This document shows positions 114 to 59,981 of a stretch of 64,000 nt of DNA, one piece after another. The number at the start of each line of letters is the position of its first letter. The first letter of the stretch is position 1. The DNA lies in assembly GCF_006345805.1 (NCBI RefSeq), contig NC_043015.1, forward strand, positions 12,338,001-12,402,000, read 5' to 3'. The notes under the pieces were generated by a model, which ran no database searches, was not told where the DNA came from, and saw nothing but the letters and a program-made list of their open reading frames with translations. The DNA comes from Octopus sinensis (taxonomy: Eukaryota). Made by a program: the position numbers and the translations under genes.

Positions 114-965
114 ATGACTGACATGGATGCCGTACCCGAAAAAAGGAGAAAACGGAGTGACAGTACAGGCGACCATTTCGACGACCGACAAACCGAAGCA
201 GAACTATTGAAATGCTTCGATAAATATGATATGACACATAAAAAGCGAGGTGTCGCCTACATCTTCAACAATGAAACTTTCAGACACTCGGAACTTACTT
301 GTGGTGGATCATCAAAAGACGCACAAGATTTTAAAATGGCATTAATAAGACTTGGATTACAGGAAGAAGATATCCATATTAATACAGATTTAAGTACCGA
401 AGAGATGATTGGGGTTTTGCAAAGGTTTGGCAAAGATAATACTGATATTGATTCTGATTGTTTTATTTGTGCAATACTAAGTTATAGTAACTCAGAAGGT
501 CTAATCTATGGATACGACGATAAAACTGAACTAGAGAAATTACTTTCTTATCTGAGACCCGATCGTTGTCCATGTTTAAAAGGAATACCTAAATTATTCT
601 TTATTCAAGCATGCCGAGGAAGTAAGATGGATTGTGGGGTCGAACAAAATGATGTTGCTTCCTATGGATTTGAAAAAACGTCATCCAAAATTCCAATTAT
701 GGCAGATATGCTGGTTGCTTATTCATCGTGTGATAAATATCCTTCTTTCGGAAATGAAGAAGGAGGCTCGTGGTTTATGCAAACTCTAAGTAAAATGTTG
801 ACGTATTATGGCACTGAACATGAAATCATGACACTTTTAACCGCTGTCTCTAAGTACGTTGCCTCTTTAGGCTCCCGGATTCCGGACAATTCAGCATACA
901 ATGAATATAAACAAATGCCTCACATTACGTCGACATTGACTAAACAACTGAAGTTTGAACCGTAG
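114..965 (+). CDS. Caspase-3/7-like protein, copy 1 (283 aa from first ATG), predicted catalytically inactive; intronless
   Basis: Caspase-fold motifs: KRGVAYIFNNETF, FICAILS, PKLFFIQACRG, ADMLVAYS, GSWFMQ, QMP..STLTKQL. Catalytic His codon is TAT (Tyr, 483-485). The S1 Arg positions read Cys (300-302) and Gly (750-752). The ORF-track start at 30 is a TTG; the first ATG is at 114. Confidence 0.9.
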   Translation: MTDMDAVPEKRRKRSDSTGDHFDDRQTEAELLKCFDKYDMTHKKRGVAYIFNNETFRHSELTCGGSSKDAQDFKMALIRLGLQEEDIHINTDLSTEEMIGVLQRFGKDNTDIDSDCFICAILSYSNSEGLIYGYDDKTELEKLLSYLRPDRCPCLKGIPKLFFIQACRGSKMDCGVEQNDVASYGFEKTSSKIPIMADMLVAYSSCDKYPSFGNEEGGSWFMQTLSKMLTYYGTEHEIMTLLTAVSKYVASLGSRIPDNSAYNEYKQMPHITSTLTKQLKFEP

Positions 966-1563
966 AACATTTGTAATATGGGATCCTTAAATACAGTGAG
1001 AATTTCTGATGCACGCACACATTATACGAATATATATATATATATATATATGTATAAGGATGAAAAGGAACACATATGATTACAGACTTAATTTGATTTT
1101 ATAAATATCATCTAACTTTTAAGACGTTTAACTAAAACTATTTTCTACCGTAAATTTCAATAAGGACACAAGTGCCTTATATTTTCATGCTAAATCTCAA
1201 AATAATTCTTCACTCTGAAAATTCAACTAACATTGTTTGGCGAACCTGGTGCACAGTCACCCCTAACCCCGGAACCAACCTTTCCGATTTTTTTTCCGCA
1301 CCGGATTCCTATGTTTTCGATGACGGAGATTCCAAATATGAAAAAAAAAAAAAGAACACGTTTTTAAAATTTTTTAATTTTTAACTCATTTTCGAATTTT
1401 TCTTTTCAATCTACGTGGAAAAATACGGAGATTATATATTTATGTGTTTGTGTATGTTTGTATGTCTGTGTTTGTTCCCCCACCCTTGCTTAACAACCGA
1501 CTCGCCTCCATTCAAAAATTGGGTTACCGACCCACTAAAAAATTGAGGTTGGATTAAAAGTGC

Positions 1564-1960
1564 TACTCTCTCTCTTTTACTTGTTTCAGTCATTTGACTG
1601 CGGCCATGCTGGAGCACCGCCTTTAGTCGAGCAAATCGACCCCGGGACTTATTCTTTGTAAGCCCAGTACTTATTCTATCGGTCTCTTTTTGCCGAACCG
1701 CTAATGACGGGGACGTAAACACATCAGCATCGGTTGTCAAGCAATGCTAGGGGAACAAACACAGACACACGCACATACATACATATATATATATATACAT
1801 ATATACGACAGGCTTCTTTCAGTTTCCGTCTACCAAATCCACACACAAGGCATTGGTCGGCCCGGGGCTATAGTAGAAGACACTTGTCCAAGATGCCACG
1901 CAGTGGGACTGAACCCAGGACCATGTGGTTGGTTAGCAAGCTACTTACCACACAGCCACT
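1564..1960 (-). mobile_element. tRNA-derived SINE, family A
   Basis: Near-complete copy of the window's most frequent ~390 bp repeat. Minus strand has A-box (TGGCTGTGTGG)- and B-box (GGTTCAGTCCC)-like motifs, an internal microsatellite and an AAGAGTA-type tail. Confidence 0.8.
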
Positions 1961-3046
1961 CGGCGTTTGGCCTCCTCAATAGGCATGTTATAAAAAAATG
2001 TTATTAGATTCAATAAAATGAATAATGTTTTCAGTTTTCATGTTTATTAATTTTTTCAGGCTTATCAATTTTTCCTTATTTTTTTGTTTTATTGAGGGTT
2101 AAACAATTTCTTTAGGTGGGGGAGATAACTGAAGGTACCAATATTTTTCATTAAACGGGGTGGGGGAGATAACCCAATTTTTTAAATGGGGATGAGATAA
2201 CCAAAAAGTACCCAACCGATGTTAGTGTGTTTACGTCCTCGTAACTTTGGTCGGCCAGAGGCTGTAGTAGAAGAAACTTGCCCAATGTACCATGTATTTG
2301 TTGACTTACACATTATTATATCTTACAATTAAGGCGGCGAACTGGCAGAATTGTTAGCACGTTGGACAAAATGTATAGCGGTATTTCGTCCGTCGCTACG
2401 TTCTGAGTTCAAATTCCGCCGAGGTTGACTTTATTTTTCATTCTTTCGGGATCGGTGCAGCCCCCTCCACACGAATTTTAGGCCATGTGCCTCCAGTAGA
2501 AAGGATTATTTTAAGTTTACAGCGGGGCTTAAATTTGAAACTGTGATAGCTTAGTAACGAGAAATGGGTCACAGCCTATCAGGCAACTTACTTGAACTCG
2601 GCTGCAATTATGTGATCGAAAGAATTTTCGACGAATTTCTGGCCACAACAGGGCTACAAACTGAGATGCGCGCCAAAATCAGGAGACAGACAGAGGGAAC
2701 AGGGGTCCATGAAAAGACAGGTTTTAGTGGTCGCAGCCGAGCCTGAGTTAAAAGGAATCGTTTGTCGACAATGAACTCAGAATCTTCTCTGCTCTCACGA
2801 CACGAAGATATATGCAGTCATATCTCTAATCCCTCGGCAAAAACCCATATATATCTATATGTACACAAAAGGTTTCATCTAACATTAAATGGGCTTTGTT
2901 GTAATATAGGTAACAGCCAAATCAGCCCACCTATTTAACCAAAGTTTTTTAACTAAAGTATTTTTCTTTTGGTTAAATACTTATAAATTAACTAAATGTT
3001 TTTGCTCCCTGATAGTAATATACGTTGCGTTTAAAATCTTCTATAT

Positions 3047-4530
3047 GCTTGTCCCACCCGTAACAAACGAGGTAGACAACCTACCATTACCTCAGCATAC
3101 AAAAGGACCCACTGTGAACGCTGGCAGGGCTGGACGAAGCCAGACTACCTACCTTCAGATGCACACGACATCAGAACTACAATCGCACATGCTATCGGTG
3201 TCAGCCTTAGAACAACGCTTAAAACCCATATTTTAAAGTTGAACAACAAACTGTATAAACAGACGAAAGGCGGTGCTATTGGAGTAGGGATCGCCGGTGA
3301 TGTTGCTAACCTCTTCATGGTATGGTGGGACAGACAGTTTGAACACTGCCTAACGACCCGTAACATCCACTTAGCTATGTACTCTCGATACGTTGACGAC
3401 ATTAACCTTGTCGTGAAACGTAATAGTAATACAGACACAGATATAGACTCTACTAAATGAAGAACAGGTGATGACAGCTATACAACACATAGCTGACTCT
3501 ATCCATAGCAGTATAAAAGTTACCGTAGACTACCCCTCTAAACACCCCAGTAATAGATTACCTGTCCTAGATACTGAGCTGTGGATAGAAAATACTATGG
3601 TTAACGGAACTGTTAAACCCTGTATGCTCCACTCACACTATTGTAAACCTATGGCTAATCCACTGGTAATCCGTAGTGACTCGGCGATGTCGAATACTAC
3701 CAAGCTCAACATCCCAGTGGCAGACTTAGAGTAATGAGGAGTGTATCCCCACTATGCCAACTACAAGAACGACAACACATCCAGCACTACATATTCCGAA
3801 TGCAACGCTCCGGATACACACAATACGATAGAATCAGAGTGTACAAAGGAGCGAAAACAAAATTCGAACGCATTCTAAGAAATGACGAAAACGGTATATG
3901 CCCTCTATACCGCAACAAGTTCTGGAATAGGTTAGAGAGGGACACCAACAAAAGGAATAAAATTAATACTTGGTATGATAACAAGAAATTTCACAGTGTA
4001 ATGTTTGTTGATTCCACACCTAAGAACGAATTAAGTAAGGCATTTAAGAAAATCCTGCGCACAACTGGCGTTAAGATCAAAGTTGGAGAAAAGACAGGTA
4101 GGACTATCAAATCTGTATTATGTAGATCATATCCATTTGATAGAATCACGTGGCGAAATAATTGTGCAGTATGTTCTACAAAACCACATGTGAACTGCAA
4201 AATCAAGAGCACTGTATACCTTATTAAGTGCCAAGAAGGTGCTTGCGCGACTAACCCAGAGTCATACATAGGTGAGACTTCTAGAAGTATCAATGACAGG
4301 TTCAAAGAACATCTGGACAACTACATTGAAAAGAAACCAAACTCCATCTTCTATCAGCATGCTGTAGACTGCCACAAGGGCTCCTTAGGGAGACTTAAGT
4401 TAAACATCTTATCCACACATCCCACTGATGCAATGCTGAGACAGGTCACTGAAGCTGTCTGTATACAAGAATACAAACCCACTCTCAACCGAAAATCCGA
4501 ATGGAGTAACATCCAGATTCCACTCGGGAG
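3047..4530 (+). mobile_element. Penelope-like retroelement (RT + GIY-YIG), 5'-truncated, frameshifted
   Basis: Successive ORF pieces give YKQTKGGAIG, SRYVDDI, LPVLD, then VYLIKC...C...YIGETSRSINDRFKEH (GIY-YIG) and PTLNRKSEW. RT plus GIY-YIG is diagnostic of PLEs. Confidence 0.88.
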
Positions 4531-5138
4531 TAGCATTCTATCAACCCCTCTCTCTCATTTACATGTGGTAATCCATACATACATGTTGAAATGCATGATA
4601 CTAAAATACATATATGCAATTATATATAACCGTATGAGCGTACATTATTTGATAAGTATGTACGTATGTGTAGATGTATATGTGGTGTGTATGTTAGTGT
4701 ATAAGTATGTACATGCATGCACATATGAGTATGTGTAGATATATGTATGTATTGTATATGTATGCATGTAAAAAAAAAGAATAAATAGAATAAAATAAAG
4801 CAAATTTGAATTTTAATCGTTGTCCCTGAAAAGAGTTATATATATATATATATATATATCAACAATTGAGGGTAAAATTAATTAATTAATCAATTTCACC
4901 AAGTGTTCAGTATGTAAAAGGACCATTTAAGGCGAATTCAAAATATTACATTATATAATTAGGGCTTAGTAAAATAAATTACTTTGCCACATACTGAACT
5001 TAGTAGAAATAGCAGCTAAAAAAAATTTTCTTAGCATTTCTACTACTTAAAGAAAATTTCTCTCAGATAATGTTTACTCCAGACAGCTCACGAAGGTGTG
5101 GGGGTAAATACAGAAAAATATCACAAGTACATAGATCG

Positions 5139-5201
5139 TTTGAGTACGTCAACGTTTCAAGATTAGCCAAATAAAATCAGCATTTCTTTCGTCAGCTCAA
5201 A
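5139..5201 (-). ncRNA. Type I hammerhead ribozyme motif (mirror copy in the other palindrome arm)
   Basis: Exact reverse complement of 5218-5280. Confidence 0.8.
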
Positions 5202-5217
5202 ATTTCTTAATTTGGAT

Positions 5218-5280
5218 TTTGAGCTGACGAAAGAAATGCTGATTTTATTTGGCTAATCTTGAAACGTTGACGTACTCAAA
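5218..5280 (+). ncRNA. Type I hammerhead ribozyme motif
   Basis: Stem I TTTGAG/CTCAAA, core CTGACGA (5224-5230), stem II AAGA..TCTT, GAAA (5261-5264), stem III ACG-ttga-CGT, cleavage triplet GUA (site after 5274). Confidence 0.8.
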
Positions 5281-5461
5281 CGATCTATGTACTTGTGATA
5301 TTTTTCTGTATTTACCCCCAAACCTTCGTGAGCTGTCTGGAGTAAACATTATCTGAGAGAAATTTTCTTTAAGTAGTAGAAATGCTAAGAAAATTTTTTT
5401 TGGTTGCTATTTCTACTAAGTTCAGTATGTGGCAAAGTAATTTATTTTACTAAGCCCTAAT

Positions 5462-5492
<31 letters not shown>

Positions 5493-5643
5493 ACATTATT
5501 GTTCAATTATCCGCACCAACGCACGGTTGCAACGCCAGATGGTTGTACCTCCAACCGTGCTGTTCACTGCTGTGATTTTGCTACTAAGGTATCGGTTAAA
5601 CTTTTGATTAATCTACTACAAGATTATTCATCTTCTATTTCAC

Positions 5644-5747
<104 letters not shown>

Positions 5748-5931
5748 TGTATGTAGAGATGGATAAGCGTATGTGTGCATACTTTAAAATTATACGTATA
5801 TTTGTATGTGTAAGTGTCTATATGATTGTGTGTACTTGTATATATGTATAAGGTTATATATGCATATATGTATCTAAGACGTTGTATCCATTCACCGTTA
5901 CACGGTGATGAGAGTGACAAACGCACGCACA

Positions 5932-5969
<38 letters not shown>

Positions 5970-6267
5970 TGTGTGTGTGTCTATATACACGTATATGTGT
6001 GTATATATACAGCCTTCAACAAAGTAACAGTCATGTATACAACTTGAACTGACACATATCAGTACATAAACATACGTTCACATGTACACACACACAGGCA
6101 CGTCTACACATTCTCCTATATACTCACATACATACGTAAGTACATGCATACATGCGTATAGGCAGGCGCACACACACATGCATACATACATACATACATA
6201 CATACATACATACATACATACATACATACATACATACATACATACATACATACATACATACATACAT

Positions 6268-6818
6268 GGTGGCTGCCCCCTCGTTATCGAGTATGGCCAT
6301 TGCGCGAAGCTTAATCAATGTTGTTATCGTGCAATGCCTGTGCAAGAAGATTTTTTTTTAAAGTGAGGAAAGGCTGTGCACTGAGTCAATCCCACTCACT
6401 AAGCAACAGCAGCTATAATCCGAAAAGAAGAACAAGTCAACATCATCGTTAACCACTGAGCCGCAGGTTTTATTTCGGAGTTATCCCAGTTACCTGAGTT
6501 ACCTTCTCCTAGAAGGATGCCCTAACAAAGGCTAGGAGTCTTTCACTCCCAATGGTTTAACCGCGCGATCGGGTATTCAGTCCGATTATTTCTATGTCCC
6601 CGCACATGATACAGCCTTAAGACATTTATTGGATGGCCATTGACTCTCAAGAGTTCCTCCGCCCTTTGACGGGTTTTGTTTTTCATCCCGCAGGGTGTCC
6701 AATAAACACCCTCCTCACCAAGCAAGCTTGGTGGGGTTGCCGGTTTAGTCGCCGACGACACGACCATGCAACAGGTTGAATTGGGTTACATGTTACCAGT
6801 AGCACTCGAAAGTGACTT
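6268..6818 (-). mobile_element. Non-coding interspersed repeat resembling an RTE-LINE UTR derivative, embedded in (CATA)n/(CATGA)n
   Basis: GC-richer 550-bp block bounded by tetra/pentanucleotide microsatellites; no coding motif seen. The family assignment is from general resemblance only. Confidence 0.35.
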
Positions 6819-6881
6819 GACATGACATGACATGACATGACATGACATGACATGACATGCATGCATACATACATACATACA

Positions 6882-7002
<121 letters not shown>

Positions 7003-7891
7003 TGAACTAACGGATACTTTCTCAGATGCAGCACGGAATTCTGTCAGTGAACAGGTCGCGGTGAACAGCGACAAAAATATTTTGACAAATTAAATTTAAA
7101 TGTTGAAGTGAATCGAACGGTTTTTGTCTGTTTCTTAAATGGCTTATAAACACCTTCCACGCTGCAATTGTTTTCGTTCCAGCACACGATCTCAGATCAG
7201 GTCACTTGCTATGTAAGTACATCTCCGTAATATTATTTTGTTCTCCTGTCGTAAACTCGTGTTTCGTTTTGGTTTTGGCATCACAAATAAAACATATATT
7301 TATACATTACTCGTTTAGGTGCAGGTGTTGCAGTGAGGTAAGAAGCTGCATGGTCCCTTGAGCAAGTGCCGTCTACCATAGCTTTGGGCCGACCAAAGTC
7401 TTGAGAGTAGATCTGGTAGACGGAAACTGAAAGAAACACATTGTATATGTGTGTGTGTGTCCTCGGATTAGATAAATCTTTCTATTATGCATTAAATTTA
7501 TATATATAAATATGTGTGTGTGTGTGTGTGTGTGTGTATCTTTGTGTCTGTCCTCTACCACCGCGTGGCAACCAGTGTTGGTGTGTTTACGTCCCCGTAA
7601 CGTAGCGGTTTGGCAAAACAACACGATAGAATAAGTATCAGGGTTTTAAAAATTAGTTTGGGGGTCGATTCGTTCGACTTAAGTTCTCTCAAAGGCAGTA
7701 GAAACAAGTAGATTTCTTCGATATTATGTTGTAATTTACCACAATACGATCTAAATTAACGAAGGAAAGTTTTCGGATCTTCTTTTCTCTCTTTTACTAT
7801 TTTTTGGAATGTGTGATGGAAAAAGGGGGAGGGAATTTTTTCTGAAATTCTAAAGTCACTCTATAGTTTTGATTCGTTTTTCATAAACCTT

Positions 7892-8486: not shown

Positions 8487-8998
8487 TTTAATTATATTTT
8501 ATATATTATTAGTAGTAGTATTAAAATTAACTCCTATGTCCCGTTTCTCAGAAAAATCTGATGCACATACGATTTAGCGTTACAAGGGAGGTCACTCTTC
8601 ATACACTTCAGTGCTGGAGAGATCCGCATATTGCTCTCTTAATTTTTCGATGAATACGGCGAGCTTAGCGAGATTGTTAAGTACACCGGACAAAACTGCT
8701 TAGCAGCATTATCATATGTCTTCATGTTCTGATTTTAAATTCTAGGGAAGTCGGCTTTGACTGTCATCCATACGGGGTCGATAAAATAAGTACCAGTTGA
8801 TTACTGAATCAATGTAATCAACTGGTCCTACACACACACATACCATAAAATTTCAGTCTTTGTGCTTATAAGAGAAAAAAAACAAACTATTAATTTTTCG
8901 AAGGGGTCAATGGATTGACAGAATCGTTCGAACGTAGGACAATATGCCTCGCAGTATTTCTTCGACTCACTGGAGTTTATATGAAATACTTGTCATGA

Positions 8999-9105
8999 AC
9001 TGCGTGGCACCTTGGGCAAGTGTCTTCTACTATAGCCTCGGGCCGACCAAAGCCTTGTGAGTAGATTTGGTAGACGGAAACTGAAAGAAGCCCGTCGTAT
9101 ATATG

Positions 9106-9170
<65 letters not shown>

Positions 9171-9981: not shown

Positions 9982-10015
<34 letters not shown>

Positions 10016-10021
10016 GTCTTT

Positions 10022-10060
<39 letters not shown>

Positions 10061-10715: not shown

Positions 10716-10739
10716 CATTACGGTGAAAATATCGACTTT

Positions 10740-10794
10740 ATTTAGTGTTTTTACTGGTTAACGTACAGAGAAACAAACTTTGCTTTTTATAAGG

Positions 10795-10857
<63 letters not shown>

Positions 10858-14756: not shown

Positions 14757-15457
14757 AATATATCGCTCTTTGTAATTGCTTAGTACAAAGTTAATTCTAA
14801 TTGGCCGATGATGAAACGCATTAAACCAATGAACGTTCTTTTTTCGTCTTTGTTTATGTTTTTCAAGTATAGTGTACCTCGAACTAGATCATCAATTGTT
14901 TTCTTTAATAAAAGAAGAATAGCAGAGTGTTCTACGAATGAGATTTTAGCTTCAAAAGTTAGTGATAGTTATAAATGGAAAGCTTTGAAAAAGAAGGATA
15001 GTCACAACTGGAAAATCTTTTTTAATAAGGGATGGTCATGATTTAAATGCTTTTTAAAGGAAGGATGGTTTCAGTTGGAATGACTTTAAAGAAAGAGCAA
15101 CAGTTAGAAAGACGCTCGTTTCGTTTGTCAGCACATTTTCGCATGCTGAGGGAATAAATCGGATTTCGAGAATTTTCAGAAACTTATTAAAAACGTGCCA
15201 CTTTAGCAGTACATGAACAGTCATCTCCCTTGATGTGGGAATTACTTAGACACACTTAGTTGTTATCGTGGTTTTGTTACTTCGTCATTGGATTATTTCT
15301 TAACAATACAGAGCTTTGCTACTTTCCAACGGTTTTCGAATCTACCCCATTAACAAATAAGAGGTAATTGTTCCAAGTGATTCTGTAATACAAAAGTATA
15401 ACTTTACTCTTTAATATATCATACCAGGAAACTGATTCGGGTCATTTCTTTGATATA
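14105..15457 (+). repeat. Segmental duplication: upstream region shared by caspase copies 2 and 4 (partner ~57725-59196)
   Basis: After (GATA)n both read (G/T)TTAGTGTAG..CTCAAGGCGTAT..CACGCACAGAAGA..CATTTCTGATCC; they also share CCGATGATGAA.CGCATT and AATAGCAG..GAGATTTTAGCTTC blocks. Confidence 0.75.
15000..15457 (+). promoter_or_regulatory. Conserved 5' flank (putative promoter/5'UTR) of caspase copy 2, with perfect 3-unit HSE-type motif at 15164-15178
   Basis: Aligns by eye to the ~470 bp upstream of copies 3 and 4 (shared ATGGTCAT, TTTAAAGA, CGAGAATTTT, ATGAACAGTCA, AACAAATAAG blocks). tTTCg-aGAAt-tTTCa at 15164-15178. Confidence 0.55.
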
Positions 15458-16297
15458 ATGACTACTATGGATGCTCGATATGTAAGTGAACCCATGAGAG
15501 CTGATCAGTTTCATCAGTCAACTGGGGAGGATTTAATGAAATGTTTTAATAAATACGATATGACGCATAAAAGGCGAGGTGTCGCTTACATCTTCAACAA
15601 TGAAAATTTCAAACGATCGGAACTTGCAACTCGTTATGGCTCATCAAAAGATACAGAAGATTTTAAAAAGGCATTAATTAAACTTGGATTCCGTGAAGAT
15701 GATATCAAAGTTTATATGGATGCAACAGTCGAAGAAATGCGCGACGCTTTGAAGCAGTTTGGAAAAAATTCTCATACTGATATTGATTGCTTTATTTGTG
15801 CAATATTGAGTCATGGTGGCCCGGACGACGTTATCTGTGGATACGACGATGTTGTTAAACTAGACGAATTGTTTTCTTACCTGAGACCCAAGTGTTGTCC
15901 ATCTTTAACAGGAGTACCTAAATTATTCTTTGTTGAAGCATCTCGTGGAAGTAAGATTGATGTGGGGGTCGAAAAAACTGATGCTGATTTAATAGGGTAT
16001 GGAAAAAGGACACCCAAAATTCCGGTTATGGCAGATATGTTGGTTGTTTATTCATCGAGTAATGAATATTCTTCTTTCATAAATGAAGATGGTTCGTGGT
16101 TTATGCAAGCTCTAAGTAAAATGTTGATGGAATATGGCAATGAATATGAAATCATGAAACTTTTAACTGCTGTCTCTAACCGTGTTGCCTCTTTAGACTT
16201 CCGAAGTTCGGCTAATTCGGAATACAATGGATGTAAACAAATGCCTCACATTATGTCGACATTGATTAAAGAACTAAAGTTTCAGTCCAAGAACTAA
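15458..16297 (+). CDS. Caspase-3/7-like protein, copy 2 (279 aa), predicted catalytically inactive; intronless
   Basis: Same motifs as the other copies. SHG intact (His 15812-15814) but QACRG reads EASRG (Ser codon 15941-15943). The small-subunit S1 Arg is Ile (16079-16081). Confidence 0.92.
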   Translation: MTTMDARYVSEPMRADQFHQSTGEDLMKCFNKYDMTHKRRGVAYIFNNENFKRSELATRYGSSKDTEDFKKALIKLGFREDDIKVYMDATVEEMRDALKQFGKNSHTDIDCFICAILSHGGPDDVICGYDDVVKLDELFSYLRPKCCPSLTGVPKLFFVEASRGSKIDVGVEKTDADLIGYGKRTPKIPVMADMLVVYSSSNEYSSFINEDGSWFMQALSKMLMEYGNEYEIMKLLTAVSNRVASLDFRSSANSEYNGCKQMPHIMSTLIKELKFQSKN

Positions 16298-18242: not shown

Positions 18243-19348
18243 TGTACTGGCTTCATGGAGGCATGGCGTGGATTCGATCCTCGATCGCCAAATTTCACTT
18301 TTCAACAGCACTTTTCCTGCAGAGGAAACAATGGTTGATTGCAATGGTTGATTGACCCTTCTAACCTCTTCTAGAATTGAGATGACAGACTCACCCCCAA
18401 CGAAATCTATTGTCTTTGCAATATACTCTTTTACTTGTTTCAGTCATTTGACTGCGGCCATGCTGGAGCACCGCCTTTAATCGAGCAACTCGATCCTAGG
18501 ACTTATTCTTTTGTAAGCCCAGTACTTATGCTATCGGTCTCTTTTGCCGAACCGCTAAGTAACGGCGACATAAACACACCAGCATCGGTTGTCAAGCAAT
18601 GCTAGGGGGAGAAACACACACACCCATATATATATATACATATATACGACGGGCTTCTTTTCAGTTTCCGTTTACCAAATCCACTCACAAGGCTTTGGTC
18701 GGCCCGAGGACATAGTAGAAGACACTTGCCCAAGATGCCACGCAGTGGGACTGAACCCGGAACTATGTGATTGGTAAACAAGCTACTTACCACACAGCCA
18801 CTCCTGCGCCTATATGTTTATCTTTCTAACTAGTTTTGTATAGTTATAAATACTAGAACTCCGAAAGCCAAGATCAGTTAGTGAACAGAGACCAACTCGA
18901 GATGGCCACAAACAGACAGCCATTTTTTGAGACAAACGGCCAAGGAAGAATACAATCAATTTCTATGAGATACAACATCCCTCGACTCTCTAACTTTCAC
19001 TAGTTCATCTTCTTTTCTCTACAACATCACTCTGTCTCTACCTTTCTTACTGCTAGAATTACAAATGTGCTCATACTTATACAAGAAGAAATTAACTTTC
19101 TTAACCTTGAATGCTTTAACACTTATATTATTATACACACCTTGCCCTTCGAGGCATGGCATTATATTGAGTAACAGTAAAATAAATAAATTTAAAGTCA
19201 ACATCAACTTTTATCATTGTTCTTCTTTCATCTTGCACATCTGCAACAGCAACACCCGTTACACTCGCTAACAACCGACAACCACAATTACCATCACAAT
19301 TACCGTTACACTGGTGACCACTGACTCCACTTTAACAATACCGTTACA
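18243..19348 (-). mobile_element. Solo LTR (TG...CA, 4-bp TSD CGAT) with nested SINE A at 18424-18810
   Basis: Reverse-complement homologue of 24570-25316; CGAT at 18239-18242 and 19349-19352; empty site with single CGAT at 36086-36089. Confidence 0.85.
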
Positions 19349-36249: not shown

Positions 36250-36731
36250 CGTGATGGTCATAATTGGAACGCTTTCAAAAAGTTGGATGATCACATTTGG
36301 AAAATTTTCAAATAAGGAATGGTCATAATTTTAAACGAGAGGATGGTTTTGGTTGGAATGCCTTTAAAGAAAGAGCGACAGTTTTATATATCCGCGCATT
36401 TTTGCGTACTGAATGAATAGATCGGAGTTATTTTCCATTTCGAGAATTTTCAGAAAATTAGAAACACGTGACACTATAAGAATATATGAACAGTCACCTC
36501 CCTTGGATTGAGAAATACCTAGATACACTGAGTTGTTATCGTATTTTTATTAATACCCCTTCGGATTATTTGTTAACGATACAGACCCTAGCCACTTTCC
36601 AAGGATTTTCGAATTTACCCCATAAACAAATAAGTGGCAATTTTTCCAAGTGATTTCGTAATACGAAAGTATTGTTTTACTCTTTAATATATCAAGCCGG
36701 AACTAGTTTCAAGTAATCTCACTGCTGTTAA
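36250..36731 (+). promoter_or_regulatory. Conserved 5' flank of caspase copy 3; HSE-type motif 36438-36452, E-box CACGTG 36465-36470
   Basis: Homologous to the flanks of copies 2 and 4; identical 15-mer TTTCGAGAATTTTCA to copy 2. Confidence 0.55.
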
Positions 36732-37559
36732 ATGGCTGCTCAACGTGCAAGTGTAACAGGTGGTCAGAGTCATCACCCAAGTAAGGCAGATTTAAAGAAA
36801 TGGTTCGATAGATATGATATGACGCATAAAAAGCGAGGTGTCGCTTACATCTTCAACAACGAAACTTTCAAACACCCGAAACTTAAAACTCGTTATGGCT
36901 CATCAAAAGATACAGAAGATTTTAAAAAAGCATTAATTAAACTTGGATTCCGTGAAGATGATATCAAAGTTTATACGGATGCAACAGTCGAAGAAATGCG
37001 CGACGCTTGGAAGCAGTTTGGAAAAAATTCTCATACTGATATTGATTGCTTTATTTGTGCAATATTGAGTCATGGTGACTCGGACGACATTATCTGTGGA
37101 TACGACGGTACTGTCAAACTAGACGAATTGTTTTCTTACCTGAGACCTGATCGTTGCCCATCTTTAAAAGGAATACCTAAATTATTCTTTATTCAAGCAT
37201 GTCGTGGAACTGCATCTGATTCTGGAGTCGAAAAAACTGATGCTGATTACATAGACCATGAAGAAATGTCACTCACAATTCCAGTTATGGCAGATATGTT
37301 GGTTGTTTATTCATCATGTAATAAACATGCCTCTTACAGAGATGAAAAGGCTGGCACGTGGTTTATGCAAGCCTTAAGTGAAATGTTGATGGAATATGGC
37401 ACCAAATATGAAATCATGAAACTTTTAACTGCTGTCTCTAACCGTGTTGCCTCTTTAGACCTCCAAAGTTCGGCTAATTCGGAATGCAAAAGTTGTAAAC
37501 AAATGCCTCAGATTAATTCGACATTGATTAAAGAACTAATGTTTGAACCAAAAAAATAA
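36732..37559 (+). CDS. Caspase-3/7-like protease, copy 3 (275 aa), catalytic residues intact; intronless
   Basis: TRYGS (S1 Arg), SHG (His 37071-37073), QACRG (Cys 37200-37202), linker VEKTD/ADYID and SYRD..GTWF (second S1 Arg) are all present. Confidence 0.93.
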   Translation: MAAQRASVTGGQSHHPSKADLKKWFDRYDMTHKKRGVAYIFNNETFKHPKLKTRYGSSKDTEDFKKALIKLGFREDDIKVYTDATVEEMRDAWKQFGKNSHTDIDCFICAILSHGDSDDIICGYDGTVKLDELFSYLRPDRCPSLKGIPKLFFIQACRGTASDSGVEKTDADYIDHEEMSLTIPVMADMLVVYSSCNKHASYRDEKAGTWFMQALSEMLMEYGTKYEIMKLLTAVSNRVASLDLQSSANSECKSCKQMPQINSTLIKELMFEPKK

Positions 37560-42899: not shown

Positions 42900-43968
42900 T
42901 CTAGGACAGCACTCTTCACTCTTTCAAATGACATCTGGTGTACCACAGGGATCTGTTCTTGGCCCCCTTTTATTTGTAGCATATATTAATGACATAGATG
43001 CCAACTTAAAGAATGCCACAGTGCTGAAATATGCAGATGACATCAAGCTGTACCTCAAAATAAAGAGGACAGATCCTGTACACTATAGATCTTTATTGCA
43101 ATCAGACCTGGACGCAATGCAGCAATGGATCATGGACTGGCAACTCAAGCAGGATGTGGACAAATGTACCACCATGCATTTTGGGAGGAAAAACCCAGCG
43201 TCTACTTACTCCCTCCACAACACTAATCTCAAAAGGTCTTCTTGTGAACGTGACCTGGGTGTTATTGTCGACAGTGATTTGCGTTGGACAAAACACATTG
43301 CTAAAATTGCCAAGAAGGCTGAGGGTGCCTTGGAATCACTTACCAAGTCCTTTGTGAGCCGCTCTCCGGCTATCTATCTGAAGCTTTATATAGCTATGGT
43401 GCGGCCTCGCCTGGAGTTTGCATCACCGGTCTGAGACCCCTATCTTACCCAGGATATTAATCGTCTGGAAATCGTTCAACGACGTGCAACCAAGAGAATA
43501 CCCTCTATCAGGCATTTGCCATATTCTGAACGCCTTACTTCCCTGGGCATGGATACACTGAAACTCCGACGTCTGGCAGACACCCATAAAATTATTAACC
43601 ATCTTACAAACAATAACTCTGAGCACCTTTTCAAATTCGACCTGTCTAACACCCGTGGACATGTTTATAAAGCCAGAAAACAGCACAGTTCCCATGTCTT
43701 TCGGAAACATTTTTTCACGCTAAAAGTTGCTGAATTATGGAACAAACTGTCGGCATCAGTTGTTAGTTGTCGGAGCACTGCATCCTTCAAAACTTCCATG
43801 CTTCCTGAGATTCGCCAACACTACACCTGATTTTCTCCCCTCCATACACACGCAAGCTTGTATCTGATTCATACACTGTTCACTCCCCAGACATTTGTAC
43901 ATTGCTGCATATGCTTTATACGCACTTTCGACAAGTTGTGGTGCACCCGAGCACTGTATACAATAATT

Positions 43969-52376: not shown

Positions 52377-52414
52377 TCTTTCTGTCGAAGAGCGTAGGCT
52401 CGAAACGTAAAAGA
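52377..52414 (+). ncRNA. Minimal hammerhead-like motif with variant core (CUGUCGA-A)
   Basis: Stem I TCTTT/AAAGA, stem II GAGC-gtag-GCTC, GAAA, ACGT, GUA; the core deviates from CUGANGA. Confidence 0.45.
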
Positions 52415-52696
52415 CTTTTTTCTATTCCTGAGCGCTATACTAATACATTTGTTTGTTTGTACACCACCTGCCTTCGTCATTTGTTTATTTTCGTAAACTT
52501 TCCCTTTATATATATATATATATATATAATCAATAATAATAAAGGGTAAAATCAATGAATTAATTAATAATTAATAATTTCACCGAGTAGTTTGGTATGT
52601 TAAAAGAACTATTATCGGTAAACTTATACAAAAATTCTATAATTATGAGTATAATTATAATTAAGGTTCAGCAACGAGTTCGATTCCAAGCAGTGA

Positions 52697-53798
<1,102 letters not shown>

Positions 53799-54342
53799 AG
53801 TACCAGGGTGTGGCTCTCATGGCTTCTGATCTTAACTGATTGGAAGTGTTATCATGTACATTGTTTTGTCTTGGTATAAAAGATGGGCTACAACAAATAT
53901 TCTGCTCAATACCACAGATTTGCTTGTCAGTTGTTTGACCTTAACCAGTTGAGCATGTCCCTTAGTGGCTGACCATATGTGCATCTCTGATCACGAGCAG
54001 AAGTTGTAGGGGGGCATCATAGCCATGTGTTGAGAGGGATTCTTTGGGGTTTGAATAGTTCACCTCTGGAAACATGGGTGGTTCTTTCAACATCCTTAAA
54101 CAACTCTTATTCAGGGACCGTTTCAGCGGGATGGGCTACTCAACCTGAAGAAAATTCTAACTGGGCCCCACCTGCAAGGTCATGTGCTGTTTATCTTGAT
54201 ATGAGATCACCATGTCGCGCACATATGGTTGTGATGCATGTGCCTGGTGTACCCTTATCGGACGGGTAGTCATGATGGGTATATTGGGCTTCGTATATTT
54301 TACCCCAGTGTCACTTTGATGGCATGAACTGCTCTCTCACTC
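53799..54342 (-). mobile_element. Second copy of the (TTA)n-embedded ~550-bp repeat
   Basis: Reverse complement of 44037-44580. Confidence 0.75.
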
Positions 54343-54440
<98 letters not shown>

Positions 54441-54528
54441 TAATAATGATAATGATAATGATAATAATAAAATAATAATGATAATGATAATAATATATAA
54501 TAATATAATAATAATAATAATAATAATA

Positions 54529-54567
<39 letters not shown>

Positions 54568-54569
54568 TA

Positions 54570-54630
<61 letters not shown>

Positions 54631-54631
<1 letters not shown>

Positions 54632-54815
54632 GACGACGACGGCGGCGGCGGCGAAAGCGACGGCGGCAGCGGCGAAAGCGACGGCGGCGGAGGCGACGGC
54701 GACGGCGAAAGCGACGGCGAAAGCGGCGGCGACGGCGACGGCGAAAGCGGCGGCGACGGCGACGGCGAAAGCGGCGGCGACGGCGACGGCGAAAGCGGCG
54801 GCGACGACGACAACG
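54631..54815. repeat. GC-rich trinucleotide array with a 24-bp higher-order unit (GCGGCGGCGACGGCGACGGCGAAA)
   Basis: About three exact units plus variants. Confidence 0.85.
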
Positions 54816-54945
54816 ATGACATCGAAAAATACCTTGGGAATGAGAACTCCTGAAGAAGGCTGGAGGGTATATCAGCCGAAATGTGTTAACAACAAACATG
54901 ATAAGGGCAAATATCCGTCGAATGTAAATAATGTAAATAACGTAC

Positions 54946-55003
<58 letters not shown>

Positions 55004-55378
55004 CATATTTATTTCTTTATTCATTCATTCATTTATTTATTTCATCATTTGATGTAGCAAAGCTGGAGCACCGTTTTGAAAGATTTTACTCGAACTAATC
55101 AACTCCAGATTCATTTTTTAAGCCTAGTACAAAATTAAAGCAATTATATGTCTTATCGAGAGAGGGAGGAAGCGGCATGTGTGAGAGATATACATATACA
55201 GGGTGAGAGTGATTAACTGTGTGGTAAATATATAAAGAAAGAAGAAAAGCTTCAAAAACAGTGAGACCCCGTAGAGACATATAGAGAATGGTAGAGTTGT
55301 CGATCTAAAATTTCTTTCTCGTAGCAAATTTTTTTTTTTTCAATTATATAATATATAATATATAATATATAATATATT

Positions 55379-55474
<96 letters not shown>

Positions 55475-55979
55475 AAAAAAGGTTTGAAAATGCAATTTAA
55501 ACGATGTTTATTTACTTTCGTGCTACAGGGAAAACTTGTTAGAGTTCTAGCTTGTCACTGATGAACTCCCACAGGCCCTAATCAGATAATGCTCTTTGGT
55601 CTTAGATTTTGATATACAAAGATTTGATAATCAAGACTATAAATTAGAATCGACCCCAAAATCAGTCATCTTTTTATATTTCGTAATGTTGCCATGAATG
55701 TTTTGTCGTCAGTTCGAAGCGTTCTCTAACCAGATTGACGGATGCATGTCTTTGGAAGTGGTTGATGCTAGAAGGGAGATAACCACTCCGAAATGCTTGT
55801 ATCTATCAGCCTGATTAGCTTCGAACTGACTTAGTATGTTTGTCTACAGAGAAAAAATTTCTCCGCGACAAAATACAGTCAGTAGCTTCGTTACGGTTTC
55901 AAATATGCCCCAGCCATATTTGAACTGGTAATAATTTTCTATTTATACACAACTCTGCTTAGCGTTTCTACTTCGTACA

Positions 55980-56021
<42 letters not shown>

Positions 56022-56124
56022 GTATATTTATTGCCATTTCAATATGGCTAACCCTAAGGGTGGATGCTACTGTAGTTTTTAGCCCCAGGAGGACACACTC
56101 CTCCAGCTGGCCATAGACACACTA

Positions 56125-56228
<104 letters not shown>

Positions 56229-56677
56229 GTAATATGTGACAATTATTCGGTAGCCATGATAAAACTCCAAGTTTCGGATGCCGAGGCGGAAATCCACGCC
56301 GCCATCTCTTTAGTTATCCAGCCATCGGGAAAAAAATATATATCAATATATATTACAAATAAGAAAATGGAGAAACACATTAGTTGGTTTATAAGCTTTA
56401 GGATATTAGAATGTTAACTTATTTAATTTTCAAAGCTACAACCATAATAACATACATACAGTATAGAATTCAATACATTGAAGATAAGAATACATCAATA
56501 TATATATATATATATATATAAATGGCAAGATAGCAAAAGACTGAAAGAGACCTCGATATTATGTAAATAGAGGAATTCATCTGAAAATATATGTGACGAT
56601 TATTCGGTAGCCATGATAAAACTCCGAGTTTCGGATGCCAAGGTGGAATCCAGCCATCGGAAAAATGCTATGAAAAA

Positions 56678-56734
<57 letters not shown>

Positions 56735-56746
56735 ATATATATACAT

Positions 56747-56782
<36 letters not shown>

Positions 56783-57416
56783 GATATATGTGTGTGTGTG
56801 TATGTGTGTGTGGTATATATCTATATCTATATATATATATCTATTACTATATAATATATCTACTGTATGATGTGTATGGGTATATTACGGAAAGGCTACG
56901 AAATGGTGCGTCCTAGAGAAAAACGGATTTGATTTTCGAAATTTGCGTCCCAACAACAATTTATTTACTCAGTCGGACACATTTGTAATAATTTTACCTA
57001 AATCCTCTAAGAGGGTAAGAAGACAGACAAAGTCCATGCTGTATTTACTTCAGGGAAAACTTGTTAGAGTTCTAGCTTGTCACTGATTTTGGGGTCGATT
57101 CTAATTTATAGTCTTGATTATCAAATCTTTGTATATCAAAATCTAAGACCAAAGGCATTATCTGATTAGGGCCTGTGGGAGTTCATAGTATATATAGTCA
57201 TAAAACTTGTCAAGATTAGTTTGAAGTAGTAATAAAGTAACTGCCTATAATGAGGTTTGGTAAAGGAAGAACTTAAATCAAATTAAATTATATTATATTA
57301 TTTTATATTATATTATATTATATCATATTATATTGATAGAACTGACTGGAGGACACTGATCCAACGAATAACCGAGAGTCGACTTCGACCGAGCGGATAA
57401 ATAGATAGATTATATA

Positions 57417-57466
<50 letters not shown>

Positions 57467-57599
57467 ATATATGGGTACACGACGTCACTAACTGGGCAAA
57501 CAACATGAAATACATAAAAACAGAACAAGTATACAGAGAAAAGGGCCTATGTGAATGCATATATTTCTACAGACGGACAGACAGACAGATAAACAGACT

Positions 57600-57637
<38 letters not shown>

Positions 57638-57650
57638 TAGACAGATAGAC

Positions 57651-57721
<71 letters not shown>

Positions 57722-58174
57722 CAAACAGATAGATGTTTAGTGTAGAGTATTGTAAACTCAAGGCGTATCGTTAATGATTTGATTGTCATATATATAAAGG
57801 ACTCATCTAGGCGATCACGCACAGAAGACTCCGCTTTGGCCATAATAATTCTGTAGCCGGTGGTTATTGTCTTTTAGTTTGAGTCATTTCTGATCCAAGA
57901 CAATTCCATTCATAACTGTCCCTCTTCACTTTTCCATTTTTTTTTTTATTATTTAGAATAGTTTAATTCTCAACTATTCTATGGAATTTTATTAGAAGAT
58001 ATTAACAAGGAATGTAGGTGTTATTTCTAGCATGACGGACGACACTTTACGCGCGTATCCACATACAAATTAATCGCTCGTTTTCATTGCTTGTGTCAGG
58101 TTAGTCCTAATCCCACTGTCCGATGATGAATCGCATTATACCAGTGATCATTATTTTTTTTTTTTTCGAGTATA

Positions 58175-58566
58175 GGCGTAAAAGTGGCTATGTGGTAAGT
58201 AGCTTACTTACCAACCACATGGTTCTGGGTTCGGTCCCACTGCGTGGCACTTTGGGCAAGTGTCTTCTACTATAGCCTCGGGCCGACCAAAGCCTTGTGA
58301 GAGGATTTGGTAGACTGGAAACTGAAAGAAGCCCGTCGTATATATATGTATGTGTGTCTGTGTTTGTCCCCCCCCCCAGCATCGCTTGACAACCGATGCT
58401 GGTGTGTTTACGTCCCTGTAACTTAGCGGTTCAGCAAAAGTGACCGATAGAATAAGTACTAGGCTTACAAAGAATAAGTCCTGGGGTCGATATGCTCGAC
58501 TAAAGACGGTGCTCCAGCATGGTCACAGTCAAATGACTGAAACAAATTTAAAGAGTAAAGAGAGTA
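58175..58566 (+). mobile_element. SINE family A, full length, inserted in the duplicated upstream region of caspase copy 4
   Basis: Head GGCGTAAAAGTGGCTATGTGG, B-box-like GGTTCGGTCCC, tail AGAGTA; absent from the homologous region upstream of copy 2. Confidence 0.8.
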
Positions 58567-58739
58567 TAGTGTACCTAGCACAACAATATCCAATGTATTT
58601 AAAAAAAAAAAAAATAGCAGTGTACTCTGAGTGAGATTTTAGCTTCGAAAAGACGAGGTGGCCGTTTGAAACACTCTTAAAAAGTCTGTAGTTATGCATG
58701 GAGCATTTTAAAACAGTCACGTAATAATTATAAATGGAA

Positions 58740-59196
58740 CACATTGAAAATACAGGATGGTCACGACTGGAAATTTTTTTAAAATAAAGAATGGTCATGA
58801 TTTAAACGCTTTTAAAAGAGAGAATTGTTTTTGGGGTTAGATTGACCTTAAAGAGAGAGGGGCAGTTCGAAAGTCGCTCGTTTTGTGCAACCACGCGTCT
58901 TTTCGTACTGAATGAACTGACAAAAGTCATTTTCGATTCCGAGAATTTTGAGAAAATTCGCAACAGGTGGCGCTATAGGAGTACATGAACAGTCACCGCC
59001 CTTGAGTTGGGATAACTTCCAAGATTCTGATGCATTAAGATGCGATCGGGTTTTTATTAATTCTCGTTTGGAGTATTTCTTGACGATACAGACCCTAATC
59101 ACTTTTCTCGGATTATCGACTTTACCACCATTAACAAATAAGTACTAATTTTACTGAGTGATACCGGATTTGGATTCAGGTCATTTCTTTGATATA
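58740..59196 (+). promoter_or_regulatory. Conserved 5' flank of caspase copy 4 (HSE-type motif degenerate, 58937-58951)
   Basis: Homologous to the flanks of copies 2 and 3; the aligned 15-mer TTCCGAGAATTTTGA has two mismatches. Confidence 0.5.
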
Positions 59197-59981
59197 ATGA
59201 CTACTACAGATGCTCGGTGTGTGAGTCTAACTGGCGATAAGAATCGTCGACCAATTGAGGAAGATTTAATGAATTGTTTCCATAAATATGAAATGACACA
59301 TAAAAAGCGAGGTGTTGCCTACATCTTCAACAATGAAACTTTCGAAGACTCGTCACTAAAAACTCGTCTTGGCTCATCAAAAGACTCAGACGATTTTAAA
59401 AATGCATTAATTAAACTTGGATTCGAAGAAGATGATATCCACCTTTATACAGACGCAACAACCGAGGAAATGCTCGAGGCTTTGGAGCTTTTTGGTAAAG
59501 AAAATTCTGATATTGATATTGATTGCTTTATTTGTGCAATTTTAAGTCATGGTGGGCAAGACGATATTATCTATGGATACGAAGGTCCTATAGAGCTAGA
59601 AAAATTGCTTTCTTGCCTGAGACCCGATCGTTGTGCACCTCTCACAGGAATACCTAAATTATTCTTTATTCAAGCATGTCGTGGAACTACACCGGATATT
59701 GGAGTCGAAAAAAAAGATGCTGATTACATAGACCATGATGAAAGGTCACCTAAAATTCCAGTTATGGCAGATATGTTGGTTGTTTATTCATCTGTTAATA
59801 AATATCCTTCTTTCAGAGATGAAGGAGAAGGTTCGTGGTTTATGCAAGTTTTAAGTAAAATTTTGACAGAATATGGCACTCAGTGTGAAATCATGAAACT
59901 TTTAACTGCTGTCCTAACGTGGTTGCCTCTTGAGACTTCCGAAGTTCGGTTAATCGGAATACAATGGATGTAAACAATGCC
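59197..59981 (+). CDS. Caspase-3/7-like protease, copy 4, catalytic residues intact; 3' end indel-ridden and cut by assembly gap
   Basis: TRLGS, SHG (59548-59550), QACRG (59677-59679) and SFRD..GSWF present. The last ~70 nt before the N gap match the copy 2 3' end except for several 1-nt indels. The ORF-track start at 59158 is a GTG. Confidence 0.85.

Follow-up and report, generated by a model that had tools for sequence, protein, structure and literature searches.

The 64,000-nucleotide stretch of Octopus sinensis DNA analysed here (the window; NC_043015.1, positions 12,338,001 to 12,402,000) contains, as judged from its sequence, four members of a five-gene tandem array of effector-type caspases with short prodomains, belonging to the Octopus lineage. 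Two of the five, c3 and c4, are predicted from their residues to be catalytically complete caspases. The other three, c1, c2 and c5, were each disabled by a mutation of their own before O. bimaculoides split from O. vulgaris and O. sinensis. Comparison of three species shows that the frames of these dead genes have stayed open and still encode foldable proteins of caspase shape, which retain the linker aspartate and the putative β6 strand. Our tentative reading, to which we would give slightly less than an even chance, is that they are retained pseudo-caspases that modulate their live neighbours. The five open reading frames (ORFs) and the evidence used for them are as follows.

114..965, + strand: c1, pseudo-caspase, 283 aa (ORF listing, Pfam, alignment, AlphaFold2 model)
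15458..16297, + strand: c2, pseudo-caspase, 279 aa (ORF listing, Pfam, alignment)
36732..37559, + strand: c3, catalytically complete caspase, 275 aa (ORF listing, Pfam, alignment)
59197..59981, + strand: c4, caspase with catalytic and S1 residues all present, 3′ end disrupted
C19:12409226-12410074 (L009:1465-2313), 7.2 kb past the window end: c5, fifth array member, 282 aa, XP_029648408.1

Both the ORF listing and tblastn over the 64-kb window gave four caspase-like regions and no more, each of them on the + strand, as a first-pass annotation of this DNA had reported. With c5, which lies outside the window, the array totals five genes, two complete (c3, c4) and three dead (c1, c2, c5). The proteins c1 to c4 match the Pfam profile Peptidase_C14 with scores of 159-200 bits (cut-off 21.4) and E-values of 6e-48, 3e-50, 8e-59 and 2e-46, respectively. 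The matches cover profile positions 1-232/233 in c1 to c3 and 1-207 in c4, where the shorter match is due to the damaged 3′ end. Profile matches of this kind, spanning p20 and p10, place the proteins in the caspase family (MEROPS C14A / Pfam Peptidase_C14). Their closest solved relatives are Sf-caspase-1 (Spodoptera), caspase-7 and caspase-3 (E about 1e-46), and they are therefore classed as short-prodomain, executioner-type caspases. The prodomain is approximately 30-45 residues long, and Pfam found no death-effector domain (DED), no CARD and no domain besides Peptidase_C14 in c1 to c4; the N-terminal tandem DEDs of FLIP-type proteins are absent. No signal peptide was seen in the cluster proteins. 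Matches to the clade that holds the C19 and C30 arrays came from Octopus species only, and a second homology search, made with c1, found relatives only in three Octopus species and in two Logan contigs.

Catalytic and S1 residues were numbered by alignment to zebrafish caspase-3 (R64, H121, C163 in QACxG, R207). The corresponding motifs in the window are listed below, with a slash after the linker aspartate.

c1, + strand: LTCGG 294-308; LSYSN 477-491; QACRG 606-620; linker EQND/V 642-656; SFGNE 744-758
c2, + strand: ATRYG 15626-15640; LSHGG 15806-15820; EASRG 15935-15949; linker EKTD/A 15971-15985; SFINE 16073-16087
c3, + strand: KTRYG 36885-36899; LSHGD 37065-37079; QACRG 37194-37208; linker EKTD/A 37230-37244; SYRDE 37332-37346
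c4, + strand: KTRLG 59359-59373; LSHGG 59542-59556; QACRG 59671-59685; SFRDE 59809-59823

R64, H121, QACRG and R207 are all present in c3 and c4, so on residues alone both have the His-Cys dyad, which is missing from c1, c2 and c5. In c1, R64 is replaced by Cys, H121 by Tyr, G122 by Ser and R207 by Gly; its QACRG motif retains the Cys. In c2, R64 and H121 are retained, the active-site motif reads EASRG (Gln to Glu, and Cys to Ser by the codon TCT) and R207 is replaced by Ile. The motif of c5 is also EASRG, with the Cys replaced by Ser through AGT, and its His121, Gly122, Arg64 and Arg207 are intact in all three species compared. Both S1 arginines, Arg64 and Arg207, are accordingly found in c3, c4 and c5; c1 has lost both, and R207 of c2 has become Ile/Gly. 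These results agree with the first-pass annotation, which had described c3 and c4 as having His, Cys and both S1 arginines, and c1 and c2 as full-length, open and deprived of catalytic or S1 residues by different mutations.

The protein tree has the form ((c2,c3),c4,...), with c1 separate and c5 basal. The dead c2 is sister to the complete c3 within a clade of complete paralogues, and c1 and c5 also fall inside that clade. Tree and residues together thus mark the three genes as pseudo-caspases, that is, duplicates of an active caspase that have lost catalytic residues. A common origin of the Cys to Ser changes in c2 and c5 was considered and rejected. Because the two codons differ (TCT and AGT), the changes were independent events, and c5 is basal in the tree.

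The recurrence of serine raises the possibility that the Cys to Ser copies, c5 above all, are still proteolytic and use a Ser nucleophile. Such an enzyme would fit the two independent changes, a third EASRG copy at C7:6764100, and the retention of c5 His121, Gly122, Arg64 and Arg207 in three species. However, of the 7 nonsynonymous outcomes that a single step from TGT can give, 2 are Ser, so that two such events have a probability of about 0.08 and the recurrence is only weakly improbable, and c2 has lost Arg207 and Gln161 as well. In clan CD enzymology, moreover, caspase Cys to Ser mutants serve as inactive controls. We therefore consider continued proteolysis by these copies very improbable.

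Each of the five genes has a syntenic 1:1 orthologue in O. vulgaris (OX597832.1; consecutive records CAI9736557-553) and in O. bimaculoides (CM046619.1), where gene order and orientation are unchanged, and each 1:1:1 orthologue group has starred support in the tree. The inactivating residues, which the first-pass annotation had proposed to seek in related species, were found in both. The Ser codons of c2 (TCT) and c5 (AGT) are each present in all three species. In c1, position 64 is Cys in all three; at position 121 O. sinensis has TAT (Tyr) and the other two species have TGT (Cys); position 207 is Gly/Glu/Gly over the three species, with Gly in O. sinensis. Because the orthologues hold the same inactivating states, inactivation is older than the divergence of O. 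bimaculoides from O. sinensis. The split of O. vulgaris and O. bimaculoides from O. sinensis has been dated to 13-34 million years (My) ago (PMC10925132). The alternative that the dead copies are young pseudogenes is excluded, since the inactivating changes are common to syntenic orthologues whose caspase-domain frames are open. Three Cys (64, 121 and 163) line the old active site of c1 in O. vulgaris and O. bimaculoides, and residue 121 has since become Tyr in O. sinensis.

The presence of the same inactivating codons in three independently sequenced species also bears on whether sequencing errors, or paralogues collapsed in a single assembly, could account for the contrast between dead and live copies. 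Such an artefact is refuted for c1, c2 and c5, and the four window copies were confirmed by tblastn. The contig break and indel errors at O. sinensis c4 are of the kind that such an explanation predicts, and the c4 3′ end is left as the sole site concerned; as an account of the array as a whole, an assembly artefact is hardly credible.

59982..60081: assembly gap, 100 N, contig break

The first-pass annotation had listed c4 as intact, which it is not in this assembly. Relative to its paralogues and to the O. vulgaris orthologue (279 aa), c4 has three 1-nt deletions in its last approximately 70 nt, after about 59913, giving a shifted tail that ends in TAVLTWLPLETSEVRLIGIQWM and a premature stop at 59971-59973, after which comes the 100-N gap. 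Past the gap, colinearity with O. vulgaris is lost, and the spacing between c4 and c5 is 12.0 kb in O. sinensis versus 22.7 kb in O. vulgaris. Some 50 nt at the end of c4 are lost at the gap, and about 10 kb of intergenic DNA is probably missing too. The c4 orthologues in O. vulgaris and O. bimaculoides are full-length (279 aa). Since the first 717 nt of c4 differ from O. vulgaris by 7 mismatches and no indel, a contig-end assembly error seems a likelier cause of the 3′ damage than a true lesion. The O. sinensis c4 gene model has been cut to 258 aa by this defect, and its truncation is a practical warning for annotation.

Over the 732-840 nt common to O. sinensis and O. bimaculoides, c1, c2 and c5 contain no stop and no frameshift. 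Every indel within the caspase domains consists of whole codons, versus only 20-24% multiples of three in the flanks. A neutral indel model derived from 15-21 kb of aligned flanks (10.7-11.3 indels per kb, 76-80% of them not multiples of three) predicts approximately 6-7 frameshifts per gene, and the probability of observing none is 0.001-0.003. When only indels outside homopolymer or microsatellite context are counted, the expectation falls to 2.6-3.0 and the probability of none rises to 0.05-0.07. Simulation with the observed number of substitutions and the flank spectrum gave a probability of 0.016-0.031 that no stop would arise. The first-pass annotation had taken stops or frameshifts in sister species as a sign of pseudogenes; the caspase domains of c1, c2 and c5 have none, the exception being a frameshift in the prodomain of O. 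bimaculoides c1.

The distribution of amino acid changes that arose after the species separated was compared between core columns, defined as those invariant in 16 catalytically complete paralogues with c1, c2 and c5 excluded, and the remaining, variable columns. Changes in c1 fell in 5 of 64 core and 62 of 179 variable columns (p = 1.6e-5), those in c2 in 1 of 67 and 50 of 206 (p = 3e-6), and those in c5 in 2 of 67 and 59 of 204 (p = 1e-6). The maximum-likelihood (ML) ratio of nonsynonymous to synonymous rates (dN/dS, omega) at core columns was 0.185 for c2 (p = 9e-4) and 0.24 for c5 (p = 0.056). At variable columns omega was 0.95-1.6; the values of 1.4-1.6 for c1 and c5 do not significantly indicate positive selection. 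The interaction between site class and nonsynonymous or synonymous change gave p = 0.055 for c1, 0.010 for c2 and 0.011 for c5. Because their frames are open in three species, their core omega is 0.19 and 0.24 and their changes shun core columns, c2 and c5 have clearly been kept as proteins by selection. The same is probably true of c1, for which the case is weakest. Stops, frameshifts and evenly spread changes, the marks of a decayed or processed pseudogene, are not found in the caspase domains of the three genes.

Gene-wide omega was estimated pairwise by NG86 (O. sinensis/vulgaris versus O. bimaculoides) and by ML under the GY model on the three-species triplet, with p-values for the difference from 1.

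c1: NG86 1.13-1.17; ML 1.15 (p = 0.60)
c2: NG86 0.46-0.58; ML 0.61 (p = 0.046)
c3: NG86 0.84-0.88; ML 0.88 (p = 0.61)
c4: NG86 0.45; ML 0.29 (p = 2e-5)
c5: NG86 0.97-1.13; ML 1.12 (p = 0.67)

The most constrained member of the array is c4 (omega 0.29-0.45), and it is the only one that seems constrained in the conventional sense. A dN/dS near 1 had been put forward in the first-pass annotation as a ground for rejecting its reading of the dead copies. Taken gene-wide, c1 (1.15) and c5 (1.12) do show such values, and so does the catalytically complete c3 (0.88). Because a live gene is also near 1, the criterion is uninformative in this fast-evolving family, and gene-wide dN/dS was rejected as a discriminator between live and dead copies.

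Alignment of c2 and c3 revealed tracts of gene conversion between them.

15674..15850, + strand: conversion tract in c2, N-terminal half of p20 including the His loop (alignment with c3)
36933..37109, + strand: conversion tract in c3, counterpart of the c2 tract (alignment with c2)

Over alignment columns 223-418, c2 and c3 differ at 3 positions in O. sinensis versus 27 in O. bimaculoides. In O. vulgaris the two genes are identical over columns 375-513, a stretch that stops no more than 28 nt before the Cys/Ser codon (columns 540-542). Conversion is thus homogenising dead c2 and live c3 over the half of p20 with the His loop, and their active sites have stayed different; the persistence of the Ser/Cys difference despite conversion could be due to chance. 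No conversion tracts were detected in c1 or c5.

Several observations weigh against the retention of the dead copies as functional proteins. Gene-wide omega of c1 and c5 is not distinguishable from 1, and the core omega of c1 is 0.75, which is not significant. Between O. sinensis and O. bimaculoides, over all five genes, coding divergence is no lower than that of alignable flanks (8.8-13.7% versus 8.3-8.6% per site). Part of the apparent constraint on c2 may have been lent to it by c3 through conversion. In c1, O. sinensis and O. vulgaris differ at 9 positions, 4 of which are no more than two residues away from a former catalytic or S1 position (post-hoc P = 0.002). The frameshift in O. bimaculoides c1 lies in the A-rich prodomain (L032:9760-10000), and the annotated start there is the Met of MTHKK. 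The comparison spans three closely related species only. Finally, in the parts of the supplements to an O. vulgaris skin-mucus proteome that were covered (PMC11431876), no UniProt accession of any of the five genes and no tryptic motif of the cluster (GVAYIFNNE, LFFVEASR and others) was found. With regard to the O. bimaculoides prodomain, the ancestral start MDDVPAKRK... is out of frame and the prodomain is lost, which could be real or an assembly error.

Many of these points would be expected if the dead copies, c1 above all, were functionless relics of birth-and-death evolution whose frames are open by chance, through low local indel rates or through conversion. The omega values of c1 and c5, the weak core constraint on c1, its prodomain frameshift in O. 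bimaculoides and the continuing mutation of its catalytic-site positions all fit such slow decay. So do the 8 of 29 family members that lack the dyad, some of them clearly degenerate (C7:6761790, C30:13138562), and the fragments with several stops that are present in other clusters. However, in three genes and three species the caspase domain has neither stop nor frameshift, an outcome with a joint neutral probability per gene of about 1e-3 by the conservative count and 3e-5 by the full count. Domain indels are all multiples of three, nonsynonymous changes shun core columns that were defined on other genes, and c1 and c5 are without conversion tracts. We consider slow decay improbable for the dead copies as a group; among them it is most plausible for c1.

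The structure of c1 was modelled with AlphaFold2 (pLDDT 86, pTM 0.83); the prodomain, the intersubunit linker and a single loop were its only regions of low confidence. A Foldseek search with this model, the only one of the array proteins to be modelled, placed effector caspases on top, with target-normalised TM-scores (TMt) of 0.85-0.91 to caspase-3, caspase-7 and Sf-caspase-1. The protein is thus predicted to have the caspase-hemoglobinase fold. The linker Asp (GAT), in a V/I-E-x-x-D context, is invariant in 15 of 15 sequences and aligns with the IETD activation site of caspase-3. The C-terminal strand KQMPxIxSxLxKxLxF, which we take to be the β6 dimer interface of caspase-3/7, is likewise retained in all 15 sequences. 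In c5, 2 of 20 positions in the neighbourhood of the pocket have changed, versus 80 of 297 overall. The residue after the linker Asp is Ala in c2 to c5; that the Ala neo-N-terminus of the cleaved proteins might resemble motifs bound by inhibitor-of-apoptosis proteins (IAPs) is speculation.

Retained features of this kind could also belong to binders that have acquired a job apart from regulating their neighbours, for example in Asp-peptide binding or as scaffolds in immunity or secretion, with diversifying surfaces. The omega values of 1.4-1.6 at the variable columns of c1 and c5 (not significant) point in this direction, as does the dN of c1, c3 and c5 (0.13-0.16), which exceeds flank divergence (0.083-0.086). 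The combination in c5 of His, both S1 arginines and an isosteric Ser is a natural substrate-trap configuration, and three Cys occupy the old c1 pocket in O. vulgaris and O. bimaculoides. Octopus skin mucus is enriched in caspase-domain proteins, although, in the sections of the source that were covered, the caspases found there belong to another clade (PMC11431876). Positive selection is without statistical support, however, the retained linker Asp and dimer strand suit a continued role in caspase circuitry, and neither a signal peptide nor a new domain was seen (Pfam reported Peptidase_C14 only). A new binding function is a possibility that we regard as somewhat unlikely.

If the dead copies do modulate their live neighbours, as we tentatively suggest, they would be made as procaspase-like proteins unable to cleave. 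The products of c1, c2 and c5 might then alter live paralogues through mixed dimers or, alternatively, compete for substrates, for IAP-type inhibitors or for the activating caspase upstream. The effect would be on the threshold or the amplitude of caspase activity, which FLIP(L), CSP-2/3 and mosquito CASPS18 also set. Recurrent conversion would hold the dead c2 close to the live c3, with the Ser/Cys difference not overwritten. The products of c2 and c5 are unlikely to serve as bait for viral inhibitors of the mechanism-based type, because these inhibitors attack the nucleophilic Cys, which both proteins have lost. It is also doubtful that the array is a dedicated module of proteases and pseudo-proteases, in which c5, whose Asp-binding pocket is intact and whose Ser is isosteric, and c2, held close to c3 by conversion that leaves the Ser codon alone, would be obligatory non-catalytic partners or substrate traps for c3 and c4, and selection would preserve the difference between live and dead active sites and make the remainder uniform. 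If it were, the module would be a heterodimeric effector-caspase system, of which no example is known from any animal.

Regulation by inactive caspase homologues is known from several animals. In Caenorhabditis elegans, the inactive homologues CSP-2 and CSP-3 restrain CED-3 by binding its zymogen. The octopus c1, c2 and c5 are inactive homologues too; unlike CSP-3, which consists of the small subunit only, they are full-length (p20, linker and p10) and have kept the linker Asp. Like the octopus genes, FLIP(L) has its paralogues next to it in the genome. FLIP(L) shares with the octopus proteins a full p20/p10-like fold, and it also lacks the catalytic Cys. It is of the initiator type, with tandem DEDs, and acts at the death-inducing signalling complex (DISC), whereas the octopus proteins have a prodomain of approximately 30-40 residues without DED or CARD and are nearest to caspase-3/7. 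FLIP(L) is a vertebrate pseudo-caspase that heterodimerises with an active paralogue (PMC7586951). Caspase-like decoy paralogues have been documented in Diptera, where Aedes aegypti CASPS18 is a paralogue of CASPS19 (Bryant 2010, as cited in the covered portions of PMC7768685 and PMC3141678). According to the same portions, the dipteran decoys are, like the octopus copies, short-prodomain duplicates with catalytic substitutions retained alongside an active paralogue, whose activity the decoys modulate. Unlike them, the octopus array belongs to another phylum, would be of independent origin, and packs three dead members with three different lesions. In common with the executioner caspases-3/-7, Sf-caspase-1 and drICE, c3 and c4 have R64, H121, QACRG, R207 and an xExD linker site; they differ in their single-exon domain, in belonging to an Octopus-specific clade and in their very fast evolution (c3 omega 0.88). 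Tandem expansion of effector-type caspases in a mollusc is a feature common to the octopus array and a known mollusc case.

A literature search found no paper describing the octopus single-exon caspase clade, intronless caspases or pseudo-caspases, and a survey of squid and octopus caspases tabulates pentapeptides for Euprymna only (PMC9389742). The first-pass annotation had considered the cluster its best candidate for an undescribed system in the window. Systems of this kind are already known, from the dipteran decoys (portions of PMC7768685 and PMC3141678) and from FLIP(L) (PMC7586951), and the octopus array is a lineage-specific new example of a known phenomenon. The machinery of cell death and innate immunity has hardly been explored in cephalopods, and Octopus holds a private, fast-evolving clade of executioner-type caspases with a single-exon domain. 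About a quarter of this clade (8 of 29 full-length loci) is dyad-less, and at least three of those loci have been retained for 13-34 My. Should the dead copies tune the live ones, they would represent a further independent case of pseudo-enzyme regulation, after vertebrate FLIP, nematode CSP-2/3 and the dipteran decoys, and would offer a compact, testable set of five small, easily expressed proteins. Current annotation labels the genes 'caspase-1/-3/-6/-7-like', with no flag that three of them cannot be cysteine proteases.

In database searches, the five proteins themselves occurred on chromosome-scale records only. The Logan contig relative P0004 (SRR11869386) was considered as transcript evidence and rejected. 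It appears to be genomic DNA, since its upstream sequence is colinear with that of c2, and it represents a different, catalytically complete member.

The flanks of the array genes were compared by BLAST of 3-kb segments, and grouping was also assessed by the protein tree.

14962..15421, + strand: proximal upstream block of c2, homologous to the c3 and c4 upstream blocks
36251..36694, + strand: proximal upstream block of c3, homologous to the c2 and c4 upstream blocks
58721..59162, + strand: proximal upstream block of c4, homologous to the c2 and c3 upstream blocks

Approximately 450 bp of upstream sequence is common to c2, c3 and c4 (70-75% identity) and absent from c1. The identity is 75% over 472 bp between c2 and c3, and 70% over 448 bp between c2 and c4. 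The block at c2 is probably a duplicated 5′ untranslated and promoter region. A few additional colinear flank pieces are common to c2 and c4, and similarity between the c1 and c3 flanks is limited to interspersed repeats of 50-100 bp. The division into flank types A (copies 2 and 4) and B (copies 1 and 3), proposed in the first-pass annotation, was not reproduced, since the upstream block occurs in c2, c3 and c4 and the tree pairs c2 with c3. With it falls the claim that each type has one live and one dead member; the array has two complete and three dead members, and c2/c3 is its only sister pair of a live and a dead gene. An interspersed repeat of approximately 400 bp, 85-88% identical, occurs in the flanks of c1 (about 1565-1960), c2 (about 18426-18803) and, inverted, c4 (about 58170-58560), and further short repeats are shared with the c5 flanks. 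Repeats of this kind account for much of the flank similarity seen by eye.

The cluster had also been described as intronless. This is correct for the caspase-domain ORF, and it is not a trait of the cluster: the feature is family-wide, and spliced NCBI isoforms exist.

8976..9000, + strand: alternative downstream exon of the c1 isoform P0122 (236 aa; NCBI isoform model)

The junction of P0122 runs from a donor AT/GTTGAC at about 796 to an acceptor CTGGAG/T at 8976; it is a canonical GT-AG junction and is in phase. The spliced NCBI isoforms, with this one junction confirmed, are indirect evidence of expression. NCBI records treat c2 and c3 as isoforms of one gene. The c2 'isoform X2' (P0003) ends in ...FEPKK, which is the ending of c3, whereas genomic c2 ends in ...FQSKN. 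The c3 'isoform X1' (P0126) begins with MTTTTDV, a sequence that the window does not encode. An attempt to derive P0003 and P0126 by canonical splicing within the window yielded no fitting junction for either.

Genome-wide, there are at least 29 full-length single-exon caspase ORFs, and in every member the caspase domain is one exon. Eight of the 29 aligned loci lack His and/or Cys, and four more have changes in the S1 arginines only. The dyad-lacking loci are c1, c2 and c5, an adjacent pair at C7:6.762 and 6.764 Mb, C9544, C30:13.139 Mb and a copy on C6349. Outside the array their positions are as follows.

C7:6761790-6764804: adjacent pair of paralogues, both dead
C9544:7731-8420: dyad-lacking paralogue
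C30:13138562-13139254 (= C6349:20475-21167): dyad-lacking paralogue

The C6349 copy is a probable haplotig of the C30:13.139 Mb locus. A long stem of 0.92 substitutions per site leads to the clade with the C19 and C30 arrays. Because 8 of 29 loci have lost the dyad, pseudo-caspases appear to be a recurrent product of the expansion and not peculiar to the window.

The DNA of the window is AT-rich (GC 0.26-0.42), with many microsatellites and retroelement debris. A Penelope-like retroelement remnant lies between c1 and c2, and a second retroelement remnant between c3 and c4.

3035-4738, + strand: Penelope-like remnant in shifted frames, with a weak RVT_1 match at 3035-3460 (E = 0.005) followed by GIY-YIG at 4100-4500 (25.7 bits, above cut-off)
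42928-43434, + strand: retroelement remnant, 168-aa ORF with an RVT_1 fragment (E = 1.9e-14)
about 52600-55050: 2.4-kb simple-repeat block, GC 0.26

The simple-repeat block gives rise to spurious long poly-Tyr/Ile/Leu/Asn ORFs on both strands.

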